IMG/VR virus record: IMGVR_UViG_3300044997_001199
Location: 124,001-188,000 of that record
Strand: one strand, 5' to 3'
DNA length: 64,000 nucleotides
Position numbers and translations under genes: made by a program. Under the pieces are notes generated by a model. It worked only from the letters and a program-made list of their open reading frames with translations. It was not told where the DNA came from and made no database searches. How positions within the stretch are numbered: position 1 is the stretch's first letter; each line of letters begins with the position of its first letter. Shown here in pieces: positions 14,649 through 27,492 of the stretch.

Positions 14649-15434
14649 TTATTTTGGAGAAATCAAATCTGCGGACTGTGTCCAAGTCACGATTTCCCAA
14701 CGACCGTCCCAGTGTTCTACCAAGGCAGTCATTGACTCAACCCAGTCGCCGTCGTTCATGTAGATTACACCATCAATTTCTTTGATTTCTGCGTTGTGTA
14801 TGTGCCCACAGATCACGCCGTCAAACCCTCGCTTTTTACAGTAGCCGGCAAGATTCTTTTCAAACTGAAAAATAAAATCTATAGATTTTTTAACTCGTGT
14901 TTTGAGATATTTGCTTAAACTCCAGTAACCCAGTCCTAGTCTGCGTCTAAGAGCATTGAATCTACTGTTTAAGTCTAGCACAAAATCATACATCTTGTCA
15001 CCTAAAAAGGACAACCACGGGGCTAAACGAGTGATTCCGTCAAAAAGATCTCCATGAGTGACCAGATAATGTTTTCCGTCTAAACCAATGTGCTCGGTCT
15101 GATTGAAAACTTCAATCATACCAAAACCAATACCGTATGGAATCAATGGGCGAAGAAACTCATCGTGATTGCCTGCTACATACACAACGCGGGTTCCACG
15201 CTTGGCATGTCCCATTATACGTCTTACAACATTGGTATGGCTTTGTTTCCAGCGCCACTTGTTTTGTTGAATTTTCCACGCATCAATGATGTCACCAACA
15301 AGATAAAGTGTTTCACAGGTATTATGTTTGAGAAAATTATTTAACTGCTCTGCTCTGCAGTCGCGGGTTCCAAGATGTACATCACTGATGAATATGGCGC
15401 GATAGGTGGTCACTAGGTATTTAACCCGGCGCAT
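14649..15434 (-). CDS. LpxH/YbbF-like metallophosphoesterase (UDP-2,3-diacylglucosamine hydrolase family)
   Basis: ISDVHLG; LVGDIID; AGNHDEFL; THGD; CGHIH; NDGDWVES. Confidence 0.88.
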   Translation of the reverse strand: MRRVKYLVTTYRAIFISDVHLGTRDCRAEQLNNFLKHNTCETLYLVGDIIDAWKIQQNKWRWKQSHTNVVRRIMGHAKRGTRVVYVAGNHDEFLRPLIPYGIGFGMIEVFNQTEHIGLDGKHYLVTHGDLFDGITRLAPWLSFLGDKMYDFVLDLNSRFNALRRRLGLGYWSLSKYLKTRVKKSIDFIFQFEKNLAGYCKKRGFDGVICGHIHNAEIKEIDGVIYMNDGDWVESMTALVEHWDGRWEIVTWTQSADLISPK

Positions 15435-15445
15435 TGTCCTGTTCT

Positions 15446-16216
15446 CTATGCACAATAACGTTCCAACGCAGCGTCGGTCTTGGTCATGTCTGCGCAGGTC
15501 CAGGTCTGGTAACTGTGTTTGAGATGCGGTGGCATGGGTATTTCTTTCACTGGAACACCAAAACTGTTGGCCACTTGACGGAAACTCAGCGTGGTACCGG
15601 TGCCAATGTTGAAAATACCACTTTCTGGTACGGCAAAAAATCGTTGATGACAGCGAACCACTTCTTCCACAGGCACAAAATCGCGCTGATAGGCATGGCT
15701 ATTTTCAAACACCGTGACCTCGCCGTGTTGCTCTGCCTGCAGGCGGAACTGTGTGAACGGACTGGCCTGCGACCCTTTGTGCTCTTCGCCGGACCCATAC
15801 ACATTGAAATATCGGAATCCTTGTACATGGATGTTGGGTGCAGGATCGCATTCGATGTGCCGCTCCACGATGTATTTGGTCCATGCATAGGGAGTGCGTG
15901 GATCGGGCGGAGCAGTTTCTGAAAAATTGGTCCCCGGTCCATACACACTGGCCGATGATGCCCATTGGAGATTTACACCATGCTTGCGACACTGATTGTA
16001 TAACCACAGTGTGAAATCCACATTCTGTCGCATGATCTGTTCCACATCAGCAAAGGTAGTGCTGGAAATGGCACCCACATGTATGACCCAATCCAGACCG
16101 GCCACTGTGGGCAAGGGTTCTCCCCATTCAAAGGTCGACACGTCGTGGCTCGAGCTCAATGCAGCGACAAGATGCGAGCCTATGAATCCTCGATGACCGG
16201 TAACCAAGATTTTCAC
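15446..16216 (-). CDS. NAD-dependent epimerase, HldD/RfaD (ADP-heptose 6-epimerase)-like
   Basis: TGHRGFIGS; HVGAISST; ASSASVYG; YAWTK; RYFNVYG..EEHKG.QAS; RDFV. Confidence 0.85.
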   Translation of the reverse strand: MKILVTGHRGFIGSHLVAALSSSHDVSTFEWGEPLPTVAGLDWVIHVGAISSTTFADVEQIMRQNVDFTLWLYNQCRKHGVNLQWASSASVYGPGTNFSETAPPDPRTPYAWTKYIVERHIECDPAPNIHVQGFRYFNVYGSGEEHKGSQASPFTQFRLQAEQHGEVTVFENSHAYQRDFVPVEEVVRCHQRFFAVPESGIFNIGTGTTLSFRQVANSFGVPVKEIPMPPHLKHSYQTWTCADMTKTDAALERYCA

Positions 16217-17244
16217 GATGTCACTGCCTCCCGTAAGTTAGACACAAAACCATCACGTGCGAGATTTTTGCCCTTGGCTTCGCACTGGATGTCGAATTCA
16301 TCGCTGAACGTGCCGGCCCAGGCATTCACGGCGTGATTCCAATAGAAATCTGAATGAGCTCGGAGTTTCTGCTTGTGGAATCCTCGCTCCAGCAGCCCGG
16401 CAAGATCAGGGCGGGTGTGGATATCATGCCCCACCAATAGGTCTTCTCGACTAACGCTATAGTGAACTACAGGGCGAACACCACGCCAAGACTCAATGAC
16501 GTGCTGCGTCCTAGGGTCTTTGGGCTCAATATATTCGCCGGTGCGCACCCAATGGTGATGAATGTCCAACACAAGGGCCACATGATCAGCCACAAGCAAA
16601 GTAAGGTCCAGACCATTTGAAATTTCGTCGTTCTCAATGGTGATTAGATTCCGGGCCTCGGGGCTGAGACGCCCCAGAGTACGAAGGAATTTGTCAGGCC
16701 CACCTTTGCCCGACAAATGCACATTGATCTTGAATCCTGAATCATGCCACGCGGCACCATAACCCATCCAGCGCGCCATGTCTGCATGATATTCAAATTC
16801 ATCAATGCTTCTATTTACAATATCGTCGTTCTCTGATGCAAGAACACAGAACTGTCCAGGATGGAAACTCAGTCTCACGCCCAGTTCACGCGCACGGTCG
16901 CCAATGGGTTGGAATATGGTCTCAAGGTGGTGCTGAATGTCGGCCTGCTGCCACCAGTCCTGCCAGGACGCCTCGGTGTAGCCCTGCAACATTTCAGACC
17001 CAAGACGCACCATGCGGAATTCTGGCTGCAGTGAGCCCACACATTCTACCATGCGCAGAGCTGCTGCGGCATTGTGATTCATGATGTCCCACTGGCGTTG
17101 CTCGGCTAGATCTGCATGCTCGCGCAGCCAACGCATGGTAGTGGAGCGACCATTGAGTTCACGATTGGCGGCATTGACCTTCATGCCGCCACATTCAGCA
17201 GGATCTTCCAACCACTTGCAACAAAACCCAAAACGTCCTGTCAT
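16213..17244 (-). CDS. uvsE: UV damage endonuclease
   Basis: GFCCK; RLSFHPGQF.VLAS; INVH; LITIENDE; VLDIHHHW; P.VHYS; AHSD; CEAKGK. Confidence 0.93.
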   Translation of the reverse strand: MTGRFGFCCKWLEDPAECGGMKVNAANRELNGRSTTMRWLREHADLAEQRQWDIMNHNAAAALRMVECVGSLQPEFRMVRLGSEMLQGYTEASWQDWWQQADIQHHLETIFQPIGDRARELGVRLSFHPGQFCVLASENDDIVNRSIDEFEYHADMARWMGYGAAWHDSGFKINVHLSGKGGPDKFLRTLGRLSPEARNLITIENDEISNGLDLTLLVADHVALVLDIHHHWVRTGEYIEPKDPRTQHVIESWRGVRPVVHYSVSREDLLVGHDIHTRPDLAGLLERGFHKQKLRAHSDFYWNHAVNAWAGTFSDEFDIQCEAKGKNLARDGFVSNLREAVTS

Positions 17245-17489
17245 TGACTACCCCATCGAAGTTGAAACCATACCGCATGTTCCTGTTCGCAAAACCAAAC
17301 CAATTTTTTCATAGAACCATCTACCAAGTCAAACGTTTCAACATAGGGTATGTTGTTGTTGAACAGCCAAACAAAGGCCGGTACGGAAATGCCGGTTATT
17401 TCCACACTGTGGCGATAGTCATCTGCATTATATATGCACTGTAGTTGGCGTCTATGCTTCACGCGGCACTGTCTTTGGTCAGAGCACAC
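17241..17489 (-). CDS. Small hypothetical protein (start uncertain)
   Basis: C-terminal ...F-EQEHAVWFQLRW motif typical of small phage proteins; stop overlaps uvsE start. Confidence 0.5.
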   Translation of the reverse strand: MCSDQRQCRVKHRRQLQCIYNADDYRHSVEITGISVPAFVWLFNNNIPYVETFDLVDGSMKKLVWFCEQEHAVWFQLRWGSQ

Positions 17490-17920
17490 ACGGTTTGAGA
17501 ATGTTCCTATGCCAAGCGTACTGACTCGTGTTGCATGAGTTTATTGGCTTCCTGTCGCATGGCCTGCACCCCAGATTCAGCAATGTCACGGATGCTAGCA
17601 CGAGGCAACGTGCGAACACGGTCTCCCATACCTCAATGAGATTGAGCCGGACGTTGAGTTCAGACTGCGGCATCTCACGACCATCGGGCGGCTTCACTGC
17701 GCCGGCCTCTGCCAGAGCCTGGCAGATAGCATCTTCGGCCACACGGCCAGCAGCAATCATGGCAGCATAGTTTGGATCAATACAGTGCCTGCGACTCTGC
17801 CCCACCCGGGTAGCACATGACCAGGTGTGTGCCTTGGGGAAATGAGTCAAGCAGTTCTTGGTCATATTCATTGACAGGTACATATCTGCGTCCTCTCTTG
17901 CGATAAAACGTTTCTTTCAT
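17459..17920 (-). pseudogene. Conserved phage gene with two frameshifts and a nonsense codon
   Basis: MKETFY...CYPGG | QSRRHCIDPNYAAMIAAGRVAEDAI...EVW | DRVRTLPRASIRDIAESGVQAMRQEANKLMQHESVRLA*EHSQTVCALTKD across three frames. Confidence 0.7.
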
Positions 17921-18615
17921 GCTAGATCTCGCAACAGTTGCCAGGTGTGGCGCCAGTCTCTGACAGCATAACACTGGCCGCGTGCCTGGTCAACGATGGC
18001 GTCAGCCAAGGGTCGATCGTTGCCCATGGCATCTATGCGATCGCCAAAAAACGCTACGTCGTCGGAGATCCAGCGCAAGACCTGTGACTTGTCGGTTCCG
18101 CGGCGGAAGATGTCGATAGAGATTTCGCCGCCCACCACGGCGTGTACGTCGGGCCAGCCGCGATTGATTTCCTGTGCAATGACAGCACGCTCACCGTGCA
18201 ATTGATCCCAACGATAGTAGTGGTCTCGATCCCAGGCCGTGGCACGACGTCCTACCACGCTGAAATTCAGCATGCCTGTGCGCTGTTCAAAGTGTAGGCC
18301 AGTACGGTGTCGATAGCCGCTGACACGTAAACGATTTTCTAGCCACGACCTGAGATCTCGGGGACACTGCCATTCGCTCTGGTGCACCAGTTGTCCCGCA
18401 CGATACACTGCATTGCCCGAACAGTTGAAACTGGTGTCCACGGTGTTCATGACCGCCTGGCCCAGCTGTTCCAGGGTCTTGCTATAGTCGCTGCCAGTGA
18501 CCAGACTCACGGTGTGTGCTCGACAAAACTCTCGAAACCAACCGCCAAATGCAGTGTCAATCACACCACGGCTGGGAGTAAGTGTGCCGTCAACATCAAA
18601 TAGATAGTGTGTCAT
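17917..18615 (-). CDS. Eukaryote-type phosphomannomutase (HAD IIB)
   Basis: LFDVDGTLTPSR; VTGSD; EQRTGMLNFSVVGR; GGEISIDIF; FFGD....GND. Confidence 0.88.
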   Translation of the reverse strand: MTHYLFDVDGTLTPSRGVIDTAFGGWFREFCRAHTVSLVTGSDYSKTLEQLGQAVMNTVDTSFNCSGNAVYRAGQLVHQSEWQCPRDLRSWLENRLRVSGYRHRTGLHFEQRTGMLNFSVVGRRATAWDRDHYYRWDQLHGERAVIAQEINRGWPDVHAVVGGEISIDIFRRGTDKSQVLRWISDDVAFFGDRIDAMGNDRPLADAIVDQARGQCYAVRDWRHTWQLLRDLA

Positions 18616-18638
18616 TGGTATCATTAATTCTTAGATAA

Positions 18639-18776
18639 CAATCTTTTTCCCTTTTATTTTACAGCGAAAAAACATTCAGGTCAATGGTTTGTTTTCAACC
18701 ATTTGTAATCTATGGTCAACAAAATGCCAACCGTCACTTGAAAGAAATAGGTTACAAGACTTACAACGATATATGA
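18639..18776 (+). pseudogene. Remnant of a GT10-like (SEKT/TEK motif) gene
   Basis: LFYSEKTFRSMVCFQPFVIYGQQNANRHLKEIGYKTY* aligns by eye with HLTEKTLRPIACGKPFLLAATPYSLRYLRSYGFLTF in 22226..23557. Confidence 0.65.
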
Positions 18777-18857
18777 ATTACAAACAGAACTGATTAAAGA
18801 TCTAAAAGAAAAACCAAAACAAAACAATCAGAGCCCGATATTAGGATTCGAATATTT

Positions 18858-18931
18858 TGGTAGGCCCGAAGGGTAACGCTCCCTCTTCTACGGTTTAAAA
18901 GACCGTTGCTTCACTTTAAAGCTTCAAGCCC
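18858..18931 (-). tRNA. trnK: tRNA-Lys(UUU), non-canonical D and T loops, encoded CCA
   Basis: GGGCTTG-AA-GCTT TAAAGTG AAGC-A-ACGGT CTTTTAA ACCGT-AGAA-GAGGG AGCGTTA CCCTT-CGGGCCT-A-CCA folds as a cloverleaf. Confidence 0.88.
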
Positions 18932-18943
18932 ATCAAACATCGA

Positions 18944-19021
18944 TCAGGCCAAGGTCCAGTATGCCACGATGGCTATTACATAGATTACTACTGCATAAAC
19001 AATCTGTCTAGCGATATTCAT
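18944..19021 (-). CDS. 25-aa hydrophobic peptide
   Basis: GGAG SD, own promoter; MNIARQIVYAVVIYVIAIVAYWTLA*. Confidence 0.6.
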   Translation of the reverse strand: MNIARQIVYAVVIYVIAIVAYWTLA

Positions 19022-19044
19022 TGTTCACTCCTACCTGTGTTGCT

Positions 19045-19073
19045 ATTGTATGGCAGGTAGAATTTGCAGTCAA
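19045..19073 (-). promoter_or_regulatory. sigma70-type promoter TTGACT-17-TACAAT driving peptide + tRNA-Lys
   Basis: Direct reading. Confidence 0.8.
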
Positions 19074-19089
19074 CTATTTCTAGACACAG

Positions 19090-19299
19090 TCATGTAAACC
19101 GCAAAGCGAATACCGTGGCGTCTTGACTGGTCTTGAAGTAAAACACTGTGCGGTCATAGTAGTAAACCGGATACCACTGACCTGCGAAAACTCCCAGGTT
19201 TTGTGCAAGCCATTGTTCTTGATGGTATGTGCCCATGTCAGACTCTTTGAGGTTTACAGTGACACTGTAGGGCCAACGTTCTTTATTCAGGGTTTTCAT
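19090..19299 (-). CDS. Small hypothetical protein
   Basis: ...FYFKTSQDATVFALRF motif of small phage proteins. Confidence 0.65.
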   Translation of the reverse strand: MKTLNKERWPYSVTVNLKESDMGTYHQEQWLAQNLGVFAGQWYPVYYYDRTVFYFKTSQDATVFALRFT

Positions 19300-19570
19300 G
19301 TCTACCTCATAGCGAATAACACACGTTGCTTTTCGTCACGCACACGCCATACGTCATAACGAAGTAACTATGATTGCTCTGTTTGACATATACTATATGT
19401 TCAAGCGTTGGCAAGATCAAGGTTGGGAAATGTCAACTGCTCGCGATGAAAAGACTGGCAAGTATGCCACGGGCCTTGACCAAGAACGACCACTCCGTTA
19501 CGTTAAAGGCTTAATTTATAGCTCTCACAGAGCCGTTGACAATTTTGTTAACGGCTGTGACAGTTAGTGG

Positions 19571-20488
19571 TTAACCTTGTCGGTGCAGATCCAGGGTCAC
19601 ACAGTGGAAACCACCACCCAGGGTGCGGCTGTGTCGCAGTTCCATAGGAATGACATCAAGACCCTGCGCCTGTATCTGTTGTATCAAGTCGATCTGCATG
19701 TGATCCACGATCACAGTGTTGGGATCCACGGTGAGAGTGTTCATGCCGATCCATTTTGATGCATAGGGATATTGGTAAAAATCACGGGGCACACAGTCTT
19801 CCACCCAGATTTTGTCCCAGGATTTCAATACAGGAGGCAAGTTGTGTTCTGTGACTCTCGATGCATTGAGCAAGACCAGTCCTTCACGCAACGGACAGAT
19901 GGTCGAATCTATGTGTACCCCTGCATAGAAATCGCAGAGGTGTATGCGTATCTGTGGAAACTGTTCGCAAAGCCAATGATAGGCGGCCATGTTGCCGCTA
20001 GCACTGCGCAAAAACAACCAATGATCATTGAGACGACACACATTGGCTGCATCCAAGATCATACCTTGATCTCTGGGCATGATCCGAGTGCTGATCCCGG
20101 GTTGTGTCAAGAAGTCAAGACTCTGTATTTCCTGATCCCGACAAGGGTACATCATGGCAGTATCGACCACGACATCGCCTGCTATGATCACCCGGTCCCG
20201 TGGACAGTAGTTGTACATGCCCTGTGTGATCACAAAGTCTTTGTAGGCCGGACGTAGGACTTCGACGCCGGCATCAGTCAGCACAGCGATCAAGCGTTCG
20301 AGATCCTCCTCGGCTTCCATCTGAATCCACTCGGGTACCGGTCCAGACGGCGGCGGCGTCTGGGTCCAGGAAGTTTTGCTGGACTCCTGTGCAAACATCG
20401 GATCCTCTGCGGGCCAGTTGGCCCCCGAGGCTGATCCTACCACCACGGTGCGCAGGCGGTCCCATTCATTGTGGCTGTGTATTTTCAT
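19571..20488 (-). CDS. Amidinotransferase (glycine / inosamine-phosphate amidinotransferase family)
   Basis: HSHNEWD.L..VVVG; YNYCPRD; DAAN; HIDS; N.L.VDP; LGGGFHCVTLD. Confidence 0.92.
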   Translation of the reverse strand: MKIHSHNEWDRLRTVVVGSASGANWPAEDPMFAQESSKTSWTQTPPPSGPVPEWIQMEAEEDLERLIAVLTDAGVEVLRPAYKDFVITQGMYNYCPRDRVIIAGDVVVDTAMMYPCRDQEIQSLDFLTQPGISTRIMPRDQGMILDAANVCRLNDHWLFLRSASGNMAAYHWLCEQFPQIRIHLCDFYAGVHIDSTICPLREGLVLLNASRVTEHNLPPVLKSWDKIWVEDCVPRDFYQYPYASKWIGMNTLTVDPNTVIVDHMQIDLIQQIQAQGLDVIPMELRHSRTLGGGFHCVTLDLHRQG

Positions 20489-21018
20489 TGTATGCCGGTA
20501 ATCTGTAGAGTGTATCGATCGGTCTGACCCACATTGGCAGCAAGATGAGGCACTGTGTTTTGCCAGACCACGGTATCGCCGGCCTGCCATTTGGTATAGG
20601 GGTGACCGTCGATTTCAAAATAATGACCGCTGGCCCAGGGTTCCAGGAAAATCACGGCTCGCCATATACGATCGGGGTCTGTGATGCCATGTATGTCGCG
20701 GAATCGTGCATAGGTGTCGCTGTGTGCGGGCAGCACTGTGCCTGGGCACATGCGATATACGGACCAGGAAAAACACTGCCAGTCAAACTGCTGCTGTACG
20801 GCTGGCATCCATTCGGGCTGACTCTGACGCATGTCATACATGTCGCCTGTGAATCGAGTCTGGGTATAACCCAGACTTCGCCACAATTTAACCGATTCGG
20901 AATCATTGAATGGCTCGTTGCAGTAAGGCAGATCGCGATGATCTGTCCAGACCAACTCAGTGTGGGTGTAGTACCATTTAGGCACGACGAGTGTTACCGT
21001 AGTGTACCACCTTGACAT
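20485..21018 (-). CDS. 2OG-Fe(II) dioxygenase
   Basis: PAHSD (HxD), distal H in PHLAAN, RYTLQITG. Confidence 0.8.
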   Translation of the reverse strand: MSRWYTTVTLVVPKWYYTHTELVWTDHRDLPYCNEPFNDSESVKLWRSLGYTQTRFTGDMYDMRQSQPEWMPAVQQQFDWQCFSWSVYRMCPGTVLPAHSDTYARFRDIHGITDPDRIWRAVIFLEPWASGHYFEIDGHPYTKWQAGDTVVWQNTVPHLAANVGQTDRYTLQITGIQ

Positions 21019-22222
21019 TGGGCAGATCCAACGACAAACGGCGCCACGGGTCCACTATCACGGACTCTGCAGGAATGTCACAGTAGGGATTGGTGTCGTC
21101 TTGCTCACCGGTGTATTCATAGGTAATCTTACGGTTGTGCGCCCATAGTATCACAGCTGGCTCCCTGAGATCAGAGACCACGTCAGTGGGGTCATCGGCC
21201 ATGGGGTCCAGATACACCACAGCATGGCCTAGCTCTCTTACATAGTGACCCACCAGAGTAGAATAACTGCCAATACAGTATTCCACGTCGGGCTTGTAGG
21301 CCTTGCCGTGGATCACGATGGGTACATTACCCATGCGATTGGCATCGGCCTGATCTACCAAGAACTTGGCCAGATTGCGTGCCTGGATTTCGCGAGCGTG
21401 CATGATGGTGTCAAACAGGTCATAGCCGATGTCATACTCCTGCGCCAGCCAACGCAGAGCAATGTTGTCACGTGGATGGCAAGCGCCGGCATCGCCCATG
21501 CCTGCGGTCATGTATTTGGGACCCATGATGCGCATGGTTGAATTGGCCAGGGCGTCGGTGACCACGTCCACATTGATGTTTCCAATGCGCAGTGCAAAAT
21601 CCTGGATCATGTTGGCCAGACCTACTTTGGCTGAGATAAAGGTGTTGTAGAAAATCTTGATGGCTTCGCATTCGTCCCAGGTACCTGTGACATAGCGCGG
21701 ATCATTGACCATGAGTGCACGATAGATATCAATCAGATCTTGCATCTCGGCAGGGTCGCCGGATTCCGATCCGATCATGACCATTTCAGGATTGATCATG
21801 TCCCATTTTACCGAACCCATGGCAATGAGATAGGGATTGTAAAGGAACTGATGTTGTGGATCCAGCAAGGTAGCAAAATGGCGTCGCGTGGTTCCCGGCA
21901 GCACAGTGGAAATCAAGACCACTCGCTTGGGCAATGTGGCATAACGATTGACATTGTTCAGGGCCGCCTTCACTGCATCGTGTCCAAAGTCACGAGGTTC
22001 CATGTGGCTGCTGGGCACTGATCCGTCGTATCCTTCCTCGTGCGGAGTGGGAACTGCAATGAAAATCCAATCGCTGTCGCGCACGGTTTCTTCGATGCCG
22101 CAGACTTTTACTAGGTCGCTGGACCTCGGGTAAATATCATATCCACGCACAGTGTACTTTTCTGCAAATACCTCGGCACAATCCATGCCCAACTTGCCCA
22201 ACCCAATAAAACCAATGTTCAT
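20978..22222 (-). CDS. ugd: UDP-glucose/GDP-mannose dehydrogenase family
   Basis: GFIGLGKLG; IAVPTP; ISTVLPGT; EAIK.FYNTFIS.K; GACHPRD; G.AYKPD. Confidence 0.92.
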   Translation of the reverse strand: MNIGFIGLGKLGMDCAEVFAEKYTVRGYDIYPRSSDLVKVCGIEETVRDSDWIFIAVPTPHEEGYDGSVPSSHMEPRDFGHDAVKAALNNVNRYATLPKRVVLISTVLPGTTRRHFATLLDPQHQFLYNPYLIAMGSVKWDMINPEMVMIGSESGDPAEMQDLIDIYRALMVNDPRYVTGTWDECEAIKIFYNTFISAKVGLANMIQDFALRIGNINVDVVTDALANSTMRIMGPKYMTAGMGDAGACHPRDNIALRWLAQEYDIGYDLFDTIMHAREIQARNLAKFLVDQADANRMGNVPIVIHGKAYKPDVEYCIGSYSTLVGHYVRELGHAVVYLDPMADDPTDVVSDLREPAVILWAHNRKITYEYTGEQDDTNPYCDIPAESVIVDPWRRLSLDLPNVKVVHYGNTRRA

Positions 22223-25497: not shown

Positions 25498-25565
25498 GAT
25501 AATCTCCTTTTAAGCAAGTATGACAACAGTAGACCCGGAAATCGGCATCTACTAGGATATTTATA
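25498..25565 (-). promoter_or_regulatory. Conserved leader copy B (hsp20)
   Basis: TATAAATA..TAGTAGAT-G-CCG atttc CGG-GTCTACTG..CTTGCTTAAAAGGAG..ATG. Confidence 0.8.
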
Positions 25566-27423
25566 CTACTTCCGTGAAGTCACTGTCAACCACAGTTTGC
25601 TCAGCAGCACCGCGTTGGCGTGCTTCGTGCAGTGCTGTGAGTTTTCCAGCGAGTTCTGTGAGTGCGGTTTTCATGGCTTCCACATCGTCTCCCTTGCCTG
25701 CGTTTTCGCAGTCAGTAAGCACCTGGAGGATTTCTGCATGTTGTTTGGACGTGAGATCACTTTCCAGTTCCTTGAGATCTGCTCTTGCCGAATGTGTCAT
25801 GCTGTCGATCTGATTGCGAGTTTCAATTAGCTCTCTCTGGCGGCGATCCACGTCAGCATTGGCCTCGGCGTCCTGCACCATCTTCTGGATCTCCTCCTCA
25901 GAGAGGCCCGAGTTGGCTCGGATGGTGATATTGTTCTTCTTGCCGGTGGCCCGGTCTTGAGCTGACACATGCATGATACCATTGGTATCGATATCCAGTG
26001 TGACTTCGATCTGTGGTATGCCGCGGCGCGCAGGTGCGATGCCTTCGAGATTGAACTCTCCTAACAATTTGTTGTATTGGAATAGTTCACGTTCGCCCTG
26101 CGCTACCTTGATGGTCACTGCGGGCTGATTGTCCTCGGCTGTGCTGAAAGTTTGACTGTGCTTGGCAGGAATAGTAGTGTTCTTGTTGATCAGCTTGGTA
26201 AACACTCCTCCCTGTGTTTCAATACCCAGACTCAGCGGAATCACGTCCAGCAGCAGCACATCTGTGCGATCGCCACTCAGCACTGCGCCCTGAATCGCAG
26301 CACCCACGGCCACTGCTTCGTCGGGGTTGACGTCCTTGCGCGGATCCCGACCGAAAAACGTCCGGACTGCCTCTTGCACCTTGGGCATGCGCGTCTGGCC
26401 ACCCACCAGTATCACATCGCTGATATCAGCAACAGCAATACCTGCATCTTTTACGGCCTGACGGCAGGGTTCGATAGAACGCTGGATAAGGTCCTCGACC
26501 ATGCCCTCAAACCGCGCACGAGTGATCTTTACCACCAGGTGCTTGGGGCCGGTCTGATCCATGGCGATATAGGGTTCGTTGACTTCGACCTGGGAACCAC
26601 TGCTCAGTTCGATTTTGGCACGTTCGGCTGCGGCCTTGATGCGCTGCAGAGCAATAGCATCTTTGGTAAGATCAATACCGGTTTGGTCGCGGAACTCGTT
26701 GCAGAGGAAGTCGATCAGGCGTTGGTCGAAGTCCTCACCGCCCAGGAATGTATCGCCATTGGTGGACAGAACTTCAAACTGATATTCGCCGTCGACGTCT
26801 GCGATCTCGATGATCGAGACGTCGAAGGTGCCGCCGCCGAGGTCATAGACGGCGATCTTGCGATCTCGCTGTTCGTTTTTGTCAAGTCCAAATGCCAAGG
26901 CTGCTGCAGTGGGCTCGTTGATGATGCGACGCACTTCTAGTCCAGCGATGCGGCCAGCGTCTTTGGTGGCCTGACGCTGCGCGTCGTTGAAGTAGGCCGG
27001 CACAGTGATCACGGCCTCGGTCACGGCATGTCCCAGATAATCCTCGGCAGCTTTCTTCATCTTACGTAACACTTCGGCCGAAATCTGCGGAGGGGCCTTG
27101 TTGTCGCCATTGACTGCGATCCATGCATCGCCGTTGTCGGCCCTCACAATATCGTAGGGCAGAGAGTTGATATCTCGTTGTACGGCCTTTTCTTCGAATC
27201 TTCGTCCGATCAGACGCTTGGCTGCATACACTGTGTTCTTGGGATTGGTAACAGCCTGGCGTTTAGCAGGTGCACCGACCAAGATTTCATCCGCGGTATA
27301 GGCCACAACAGAAGGAGTGGTTCTGGCTCCTTCGGCATTTTCGATAACTCTCGGGTTTCCATTTTCGATCACAGCCACGCAGGAATTGGTGGTGCCAAGA
27401 TCGATACCAATGATTTTGCTCAT
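25561..27423 (-). CDS. dnaK: Chaperone DnaK (Hsp70)
   Basis: [15 protein letters not shown]; [20 protein letters not shown]; [10 protein letters not shown]; LVGGQTRMP; full length. Confidence 0.99.
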
Positions 27424-27492
27424 AGTGTTCTCCTTGGTTAAGCAAGAATAAGTCGAGATCCCCGGAATGGGCAATCTCTAGTGCTATTTATA
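27424..27492 (-). promoter_or_regulatory. Conserved leader copy C (dnaK)
   Basis: TATAAATA..GAGATT-G-CCC attcc GGG-GATCTC..CTTGCTTAA cc AAGGAG..ATG. Confidence 0.8.

Follow-up and report, generated by a model that had tools for sequence, protein, structure and literature searches.

Phage-encoded tRNAs and their role against tRNA-targeting defences are known. The closest described case is the phage T5 tRNA-LysUUU, which suppresses the PARIS system (PMC11464382; bioRxiv 10.1101/2025.02.04.636281). According to those papers, the PARIS nuclease AriB cuts E. coli tRNA-Lys after C40 in U36AAUC|A41, T5 tRNA-Lys escapes through U39>A and A41>C, and U16>C also impairs cleavage. Thus, as reported there, T5 resistance maps to point changes at positions 39, 41 and 16. 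A second line of work (eLife, PMC10264068) describes phage tRNAs that evade anticodon nucleases through changes in the anticodon loop; the D-loop, T-loop and elbow are not mentioned in that paper. Functional tRNAs that depart from the invariant core are also known, namely tRNA-Sec, tRNA-Pyl and type II mitochondrial tRNAs (review of 2020, PMC7609411). They have small D-loops, short variable loops, and missing G18G19 or T-Psi-C, and they serve one special amino acid or an organelle and have dedicated partners. That review does not mention phages or viruses.

In this study, we analyzed a tRNA-LysUUU gene in a window of 64,000 nucleotides, which corresponds to bases 124001-188000 of the 215,330-bp IMG/VR virus record IMGVR_UViG_3300044997_001199 (about 61% complete according to CheckV). 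Like the T5 tRNA, it is a phage-encoded tRNA-LysUUU. It shares the letters U36AAACC41, which the AriB preprint gives for the PARIS-resistant T5 tRNA-Lys, and it lacks U16 and U17, which that preprint implicates in AriB binding. However, its core is rewired, and resistance could only be inferred from these letters. In contrast to the phage tRNAs of the eLife study, its anticodon loop is canonical and the changes are in the core and elbow, although the idea that phage tRNAs differ from host tRNAs so as to escape host tRNA-targeting factors is common to both. Canonical bacterial tRNA-LysUUU shares the 7/4/5/5 cloverleaf, the CUUUUAA anticodon loop, A73 and CCA. However, the five cellular tRNA-LysUUU examples that we examined have U8, A14, G18G19, a 5-nt variable loop with G46 and U47, and GGUUCRA. 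Unlike tRNA-Sec, tRNA-Pyl and the mitochondrial tRNAs, the group to which the gene belongs serves ordinary amino acids, and keeps 7/5 acceptor/T helices and two connector bases.

The preliminary description of this gene, made from the sequence alone, had reported an intact cloverleaf with encoded CCA and a canonical anticodon loop, A8, the unusual D- and T-loops, three G-U pairs in the acceptor stem, and a sigma70 promoter shared with a 25-aa hydrophobic peptide. This observation holds, and every literal statement in it is correct. Two refinements apply. The D-loop still has G19 and the T-loop still has C56, so only one G of the GG and only T54 and Psi55 of the T-Psi-C motif are replaced. Moreover, the variable loop has only 4 nt, without G46 and U47. 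The positions of the features are summarized in Table 1.

Table 1. Features of the tRNA locus (window coordinates)
Feature	Position	Strand	Description and evidence
tRNA-Lys(UUU) gene	18858..18931	-	71-nt body plus encoded CCA (18858-18860); Rfam RF00005, 41.8 bits, model positions 1-71; called by ARAGORN with the relaxed -ps setting as tRNA-Lys(ttt) at c[142858,142931] of the record
Anticodon	18897..18899	-	UUU (positions 34-36) in a canonical 7-nt loop CUUUUAA; sequence and Rfam alignment
Core module	18908..18924	-	A8, A9, D-stem GCUU/AAGC, D-loop UAAAGUG (U14, A15, A16, A18, G19, U20, G21); A8 kept in 119 of 120 distinct Lys members found without constraining the D arm
Variable loop	18886..18889	-	AGAA (A44, G45, A46, A48; no position 47); in 46 Lys members found without constraining the variable loop, G45 and A46 invariant and A48 kept in at least 90%; GAA fixed by the search pattern in the 219 class members
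T-loop	18874..18880	-	AGCGUUA (A54, G55, C56, G57, U58, U59, A60); same loop in 24 distinct class members with Lys, Trp, Pro and Asn anticodons; C56 invariant in 46 of 46 members found without constraining the T arm
Promoter-like site	19045..19073	-	Sigma-70-like TTGACT-17 nt-TACAAT, 114 nt upstream of the tRNA 5' end; consensus scan, 10 of 12 matches; function inferred
25-codon ORF	18944..19021	-	Hydrophobic peptide MNIARQIVYAVVIYVIAIVAYWTLA, preceded by GGAG, ending 12 nt before the tRNA; no PHROG family match; not conserved next to homologous tRNAs; putative coding sequence

The remaining parts of the RNA are acceptor strands GGGCUUG / CGGGCCU with G1.U72, U5.G68 and U6.G67, A26, anticodon stem ACGGU / ACCGU, T-stem GAGGG / CCCUU, which begins with G49.U65, and discriminator A73. 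Thus, of the canonical core bases U8, A14, G18, G19, T54, Psi55, C56 and A58, only G19 and C56 are kept, and A8, U14, A18, A54, G55 and U58 replace the others. The Rfam tRNA model matches the gene end to end, above the gathering score of 29 (E 1.8e-5 over the whole window). In contrast, ARAGORN at default settings finds no tRNA in the window.

The DNA occurs in several lake-water metagenomes, and contigs from other samples cover the tRNA region with 0 differences. Therefore, the sequence is not an assembly error. We looked for expression in public sequencing runs. Seven runs hold the locus; all are lake-water DNA and none is RNA. Four of these runs showed only identical contigs without micro-diversity, and gave no information on selection or transcripts. 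The record has 15 further tRNAs in two arrays, near 45 kb and 198-202 kb, and all of them have U8, GG and GTTCRA. The tRNA under study is the only tRNA-Lys in the record and stands alone more than 55 kb from either array. Its neighbours are auxiliary genes: a PMM-like hydrolase, UvdE, sugar-nucleotide enzymes and small ORFs without family matches. The region has 3 promoter-like sites against 1.9 +/- 1.5 in shuffled sequences, so the count alone is not significant. No terminator-like site was found. Co-transcription of the 25-codon ORF and the tRNA is plausible but inferred. The possibility that this ORF is a lysine attenuator was rejected, because it has no Lys codon.

We then tested whether the gene has relatives. 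Megablast of 2 kb against isolate phages found nothing, and blastn of 4 kb matched only the tRNA itself, in Synechococcus phage BUCT-ZZ01, where it is unannotated and lies under a "hypothetical protein" CDS. A pattern taken from the two D arms plus the Lys anticodon loop found 60 viral contigs. A pattern anchored on the anticodon loop, variable loop and T arm, in which the D arm was left free, gave at least 119 hits. Together, these provided at least 120 distinct tRNA-LysUUU sequences. With hundreds of homologues in viral contigs, the gene is far more than a chance resemblance. In an alignment of 46 distinct members, 99.4% of cloverleaf cells are standard pairs and 14 of 21 pairs show changes on both sides. 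None of 500 shuffles reached the observed covariation, and sliding the partners destroyed it. Blastn of 6.5 kb around the tRNA against all fetched loci matched only 18838-18946, that is the tRNA and at most about 20 nt beside it. Thus, only the tRNA itself is conserved, the flanks are unrelated, and this comparison showed no conserved partner gene or leader peptide.

Next, three further scans were performed with a scaffold pattern in which the anticodon was free. After the scans were combined and filtered for good stems, 219 distinct cloverleaves were obtained. The scaffold comprises A8 and A9 with U14, D-stem GCWU/AWGY, D-loop UAA(N)RGUG, a 4-nt variable loop NGAA, T-loop NNCNNUA with C56, and 18:55 as G:U or A:G/C. 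The tRNA in the window matches every element. The near-invariant, A-rich module of the core can be written as A8, A9; G10, C11, W12, U13; U14, A15, A16, (N17), R18, G19, U20, G21; A22, W23, G24, Y25; and N44, G45, A46, A48. It should be mentioned that our search patterns fixed parts of the scaffold, and the invariance of those parts is partly by construction. G19 and C56 never vary, however, even where the search did not fix them. The minimum-energy fold pairs U14.G21 and A15-U20 and extends the D-stem to 6 bp, like tRNA-Sec, which has a 6-bp D-stem with a 4-nt loop. Because these four bases almost never vary, there is no covariation to distinguish this fold from a swapped 8:14 tertiary pair.

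The elbow is rewired but not lost. In the 219 class members, 18:55 is G:U in 133, A:G in 69, G:C in 7, A:C in 5 and A:U in 5. On a tree built without these columns (the trees rest on 63 columns), positions 18 and 55 change together in about 8 of 10 phylogenetically independent pairs and in opposite directions in about 0 (sign test, median p 0.008). Positions 54 and 58 also co-vary and have the highest mutual information after the stem pairs: A:U in 77, G:G in 61, canonical U:A in 52 and C:A in 12. The tRNA in the window is of the A18:G55, A54:U58 type. Watson-Crick kissing between the D-loop and T-loop was rejected, because in our reading the G54/G58 variants do not support it. The deviations are therefore conserved and co-varying instead of random, a criterion that had been set beforehand against a pseudo-tRNA.

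The scaffold is not specific to lysine. The distinct members carry the anticodons Lys UUU (at least 90), His GUG (60), Lys CUU (34), Trp CCA (19), Thr UGU (4), Asn GUU (4), Met CAU (3), Pro UGG (2), Ile GAU (1), Val UAC (1) and Gln UUG (1); class II tRNAs and 8-nt T-loops are excluded from this spectrum by the patterns. Lys, His and Trp make up 93% of distinct members. A73 is present in 123 of 124 Lys members, encoded G-1 in 60 of 60 and C73 in 59 of 60 His members, and C1:G72 and A73 in both Pro members. These match the bacterial identity sets in PMC9976931, in which the Lys set is U34, U35, U36 and A73; the tRNA in the window has both the anticodon and A73. G73 is present in 17 of 19 Trp and 4 of 4 Asn members, U1:A72 and G73 in the single Gln member, and G1:C72 in Thr members; these are also bacterial identity marks of the respective synthetases. 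This is strong indirect evidence that these RNAs are charged and used. Isoacceptors whose synthetases read the core or the D-loop are absent, for example Arg, which needs A20. We infer that this reflects a compatibility constraint.

Class members lie in phage tRNA arrays. The median distance to the next tRNA is 12 nt, and 270 of 284 members lie less than 500 nt from another tRNA; the copy in the window is solitary, unlike 97% of relatives. A second tRNA with the same anticodon was called in the ~10-kb locus examined in only 8 of 119 UUU cases. In isolates, Pseudomonas phage ventosus carries an unannotated Pro UGG member, Xanthomonas phage X1 carries an unannotated Lys UUU member, and Curtobacterium phage Yappy carries an annotated tRNA-Lys(ctt). 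Xanthomonas phage BUDD and a 595-kb uncultured phage gave BLAST matches only, unannotated in BUDD and in a record without annotation in the latter. In cellular genomes, the Lys pattern occurs in 2 contigs among 185,579 species genomes, and both are roughly 10-kb MAG contigs with phage-like mixed tRNA arrays. The general pattern was found in 0 of 800 other sampled genomes, which is a limited sample. In five cellular genomes, 0 of 49 top-scoring tRNAs have A8:U14, and their tRNA-LysUUU genes are canonical.

Taking these results together, we propose, with reasonable but not full confidence, that this is a working, phage-encoded elongator tRNA-LysUUU that belongs to a large structural class of phage tRNAs not found in the cellular genomes searched. 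What the analysis establishes is an intact, selected tRNA with lysine identity marks, which is the only tRNA-Lys in the part of the phage genome examined; transcription, processing, charging, decoding and any advantage of the alternative core are inferred from sequence. In this view, the tRNA would be transcribed from its own sigma-70-like promoter, probably together with the short upstream ORF, and RNase P and 3' trimming would release it down to the encoded CCA. The host class II LysRS, which reads only the anticodon and A73, would charge it, since no class II LysRS-type domain, CCA-adding enzyme, T4 Rnl1 or RtcB gene was found in the 215-kb record. The Rnl1 control gave no signal in any control genome, so that negative is weak, and because the record is only about 61% complete, a second tRNA-Lys or a dedicated enzyme could lie in the missing part. 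The tRNA would then decode AAA/AAG; AAA accounts for 62% of Lys codons in the long ORFs of the phage. The L-shape would be kept by a different set of contacts, in which G19:C56 is retained, 18:55 is A:G instead of G:Psi, 54:58 is A:U instead of T:A, and 8:14 is A:U instead of U:A.

Why such a core exists can only be inferred. s4U8, Gm18, m7G46, acp3U47, m5U54 and Psi55 have no substrate base here, and there are no host-specific core identity elements. We consider it most likely that the tRNA is thereby independent of host-specific maturation and a poor substrate for host factors, tRNA nucleases included, that read the canonical core or D-loop. It would then work in many hosts, and this would explain the spread of the class across phages of cyanobacteria, Proteobacteria and Actinobacteria. 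However, escape from tRNA nucleases as the origin of the core is possible but unproven, and the core could be a neutral lineage signature. If the scaffold were generally advantageous, more isoacceptors would be expected to use it, and the predominance of Lys, His and Trp is unexplained. A bolder form of this idea, which is tentative, is that phages maintain and exchange a distinct tRNA architecture that cells do not use, as a portable, host-independent decoder that needs no host core modifications and is not recognised by tRNA-directed immune nucleases and other host factors that read the canonical core.

The preliminary description had inferred a nuclease-resistant replacement or decoy tRNA, because tRNA-LysUUU is the target of PrrC and AriB and a phage tRNA-Lys rescues PARIS. 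This interpretation is partly supported: the tRNA is intact and selected with rewired contacts, but the argument specific to PrrC and PARIS is weakened. Among the alternatives, a dedicated anti-defence tRNA that, as the T5 tRNA-Lys does, would replace host tRNA-LysUUU when PrrC-like or PARIS-like nucleases destroy it survives best, although we consider it unlikely. Lys UUU is the commonest anticodon on the scaffold, Thr UGU and Asn GUU, the other AriB targets, also occur on it, and the gene has its own promoter-like site away from the tRNA arrays. Moreover, with A39, C41, A16 and no position 17, this copy would probably escape that particular enzyme, as judged from sequence alone for a phage whose host and host defences are unknown. 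However, UAAACC occurs in only 4 of 90 distinct LysUUU members, positions 39-41 vary freely within the family, T5 escapes through point changes in a canonical tRNA, and the scaffold serves ten other anticodons. Therefore, a PrrC/PARIS-specific explanation cannot account for it, and nuclease evasion remains a live hypothesis for the class that is not specific to lysine. The absence of tRNA repair genes from the record says little.

Less likely still is an ordinary codon-supply tRNA whose odd core is a neutral, inherited signature of one successful phage tRNA lineage that spread horizontally. The AAA preference, the location of members in ordinary tRNA arrays, and the D-arm and variable-loop module shared almost letter for letter across isoacceptors, which fits common descent, are in its favour. 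However, U8 and A14 are near-invariant in cellular tRNAs, and replacing several invariant contacts together is unlikely to be neutral. The repeated, coordinated 18:55 switches show active selection on the alternative elbow, and the module persists across phages of four bacterial phyla.

A non-ribosomal aminoacyl donor, like the staphylococcal cell-wall tRNA-Gly species that lack T-Psi-C, or an uncharged decoy that soaks up a nuclease, is very unlikely. T54 and Psi55 are lost, G18 is changed, 1:72 is a weak G.U pair and the T-stem begins with G.U. However, the G19:C56 face on which the ribosome and RNase P stack is invariant, the groups keep the identity marks of their synthetases, members are usually the only copy of their anticodon called in the loci examined, and many members have fully canonical T-loops (UUCGAUA in 37 distinct members) on the same D-arm module. 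No aminoacyl-transferase gene is evident nearby. A decaying pseudo-tRNA, suggested by the rejection by default ARAGORN and by an Rfam score below the 60-77 bits of cellular tRNAs, is contradicted by four intact stems, by deviations that are identical or co-varying in hundreds of relatives, and by conservation that stops exactly at the tRNA borders.

U8, A14, G18 and T54-Psi55 are among the most conserved nucleotides in biology. A natural set of hundreds of tRNAs that replaces them in a coordinated, co-varying way and still carries correct identity marks is a ready-made experiment on what the tRNA core is for. If the alternative core resists tRNA-directed defences or makes the tRNA independent of host modification enzymes, this is a new counter-defence principle, distinct from the anticodon-loop and anticodon-stem changes known so far, and the class might also give synthetic biology compact, orthogonal-looking scaffolds. 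We found no description of the class in searches for its motifs, for A8-U14 in a tRNA sense, or for phage tRNAs with altered elbow, D-loop or T-loop, although most subscription journals were outside these searches and earlier description cannot be excluded.

ARAGORN at default settings finds only 11 of 106 members of the A18:G55 subtype, and several isolate genomes leave class members unannotated or place a "hypothetical protein" over them. Phage tRNA inventories are therefore incomplete. A tRNA-Glu-like element with a similar T arm is present in Stenotrophomonas phage BUCTxx99; its D arm could not be parsed confidently and it was left out of the class counts. In other viral tRNAs, A8:U14 also occurs with canonical elbows.

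We examined the first acceptor pair of the tRNA in its relatives. In alignment A1, which contains 46 members of the class, the pair formed by positions 1 and 72 is G.U, A:U or U:A in 43 members (G.U in 36), G:C in only 2 and U.G in one. Across all 90 Lys(UUU) class members collected, G:C occurs in 15. A weak 1:72 pair is unusual for elongator tRNAs. The coordinates of these positions and of the other features described in this section are summarized in the table.

Features observed in and around the tRNA locus, elsewhere in the virus record and in isolate phages
Feature	Sequence	Coordinates	Strand
Run of auxiliary genes surrounding the tRNA	Window	14649-22222	-
Second promoter-like site	Window	18656-18684	-
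Position 72 of the tRNA	Window	18861	
Position 1 of the tRNA	Window	18931	
DnaK/Hsp70 homologue	Window	25561-27474	-
Permuted tmRNA	L367 (locus of the same virus record, outside the window)	1232-1620 (about 48.1-48.5 kb of the record)	-
Degenerate tRNA-like copy	L014 (locus of the same virus record, outside the window)	1501-1562 (record 200580-200641)	
Class member, Pro(UGG)	L080 (Pseudomonas phage ventosus)	1496-1566	
Class member, Lys(UUU)	L366 (Xanthomonas phage X1)	about 1494-1567	
Class member, Lys(UUU)	L017 (Synechococcus phage BUCT-ZZ01)	4005-4078	

The tRNA is surrounded by a run of auxiliary genes: a metallophosphatase, an NAD-dependent epimerase, the UV-damage endonuclease UvdE, a PMM-like hydrolase, a weak arginine-deiminase-like hit, an Asp/Asn hydroxylase-like gene and a UDP-glucose/GDP-mannose dehydrogenase-like gene. 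Between the tRNA and the PMM-like gene, and just after a 7-bp hairpin, there is a second promoter-like site, TTGACC-17-TAAAAT, which has 10 of 12 matches. In addition, the window encodes a full-length DnaK/Hsp70 homologue (phrog_22485, 897 bits). This homologue is about 66% identical to DnaK coding sequences in records labelled Pseudomonas, Salmonella and Acinetobacter, and similar genes occur in uncultured phages of 480-735 kb.

Outside the window, the same virus record encodes a permuted (two-piece) tmRNA. The Rfam beta_tmRNA model scores 121.9 bits (cut-off 84) and the tmRNA_permuted model scores 123.1 bits. The tag given by ARAGORN is ANDDVYAEDLRLAA. This result hints at a betaproteobacterial host. 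The record also contains a degenerate tRNA-like copy, which resembles the tRNA-Arg(UCU) of the phage. The anticodon loop of this copy is CUUAAAA, its acceptor strands do not pair, and Rfam matches only model positions 6-65 (41.5 bits). It is probably a pseudo-tRNA.

Among the viral loci L017-L361, the combination of A8 with U14 also occurs in phage tRNAs that keep the canonical G18G19 and GGTTCRA (for example, Gly UCC, Thr, Asp and Ala). Thus, the swapped 8:14 pair is broader than the class defined here. Furthermore, class members are unannotated in isolate records. These are a Pro(UGG) member in Pseudomonas phage ventosus, a Lys(UUU) member in Xanthomonas phage X1 and a Lys(UUU) member in Synechococcus phage BUCT-ZZ01, the last of which lies under a coding sequence annotated as a "hypothetical protein". 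ARAGORN at default settings finds 11 of 106 members of the A18:G55 type. In contrast, it finds 126 of 167 members of the G18:U55 type.
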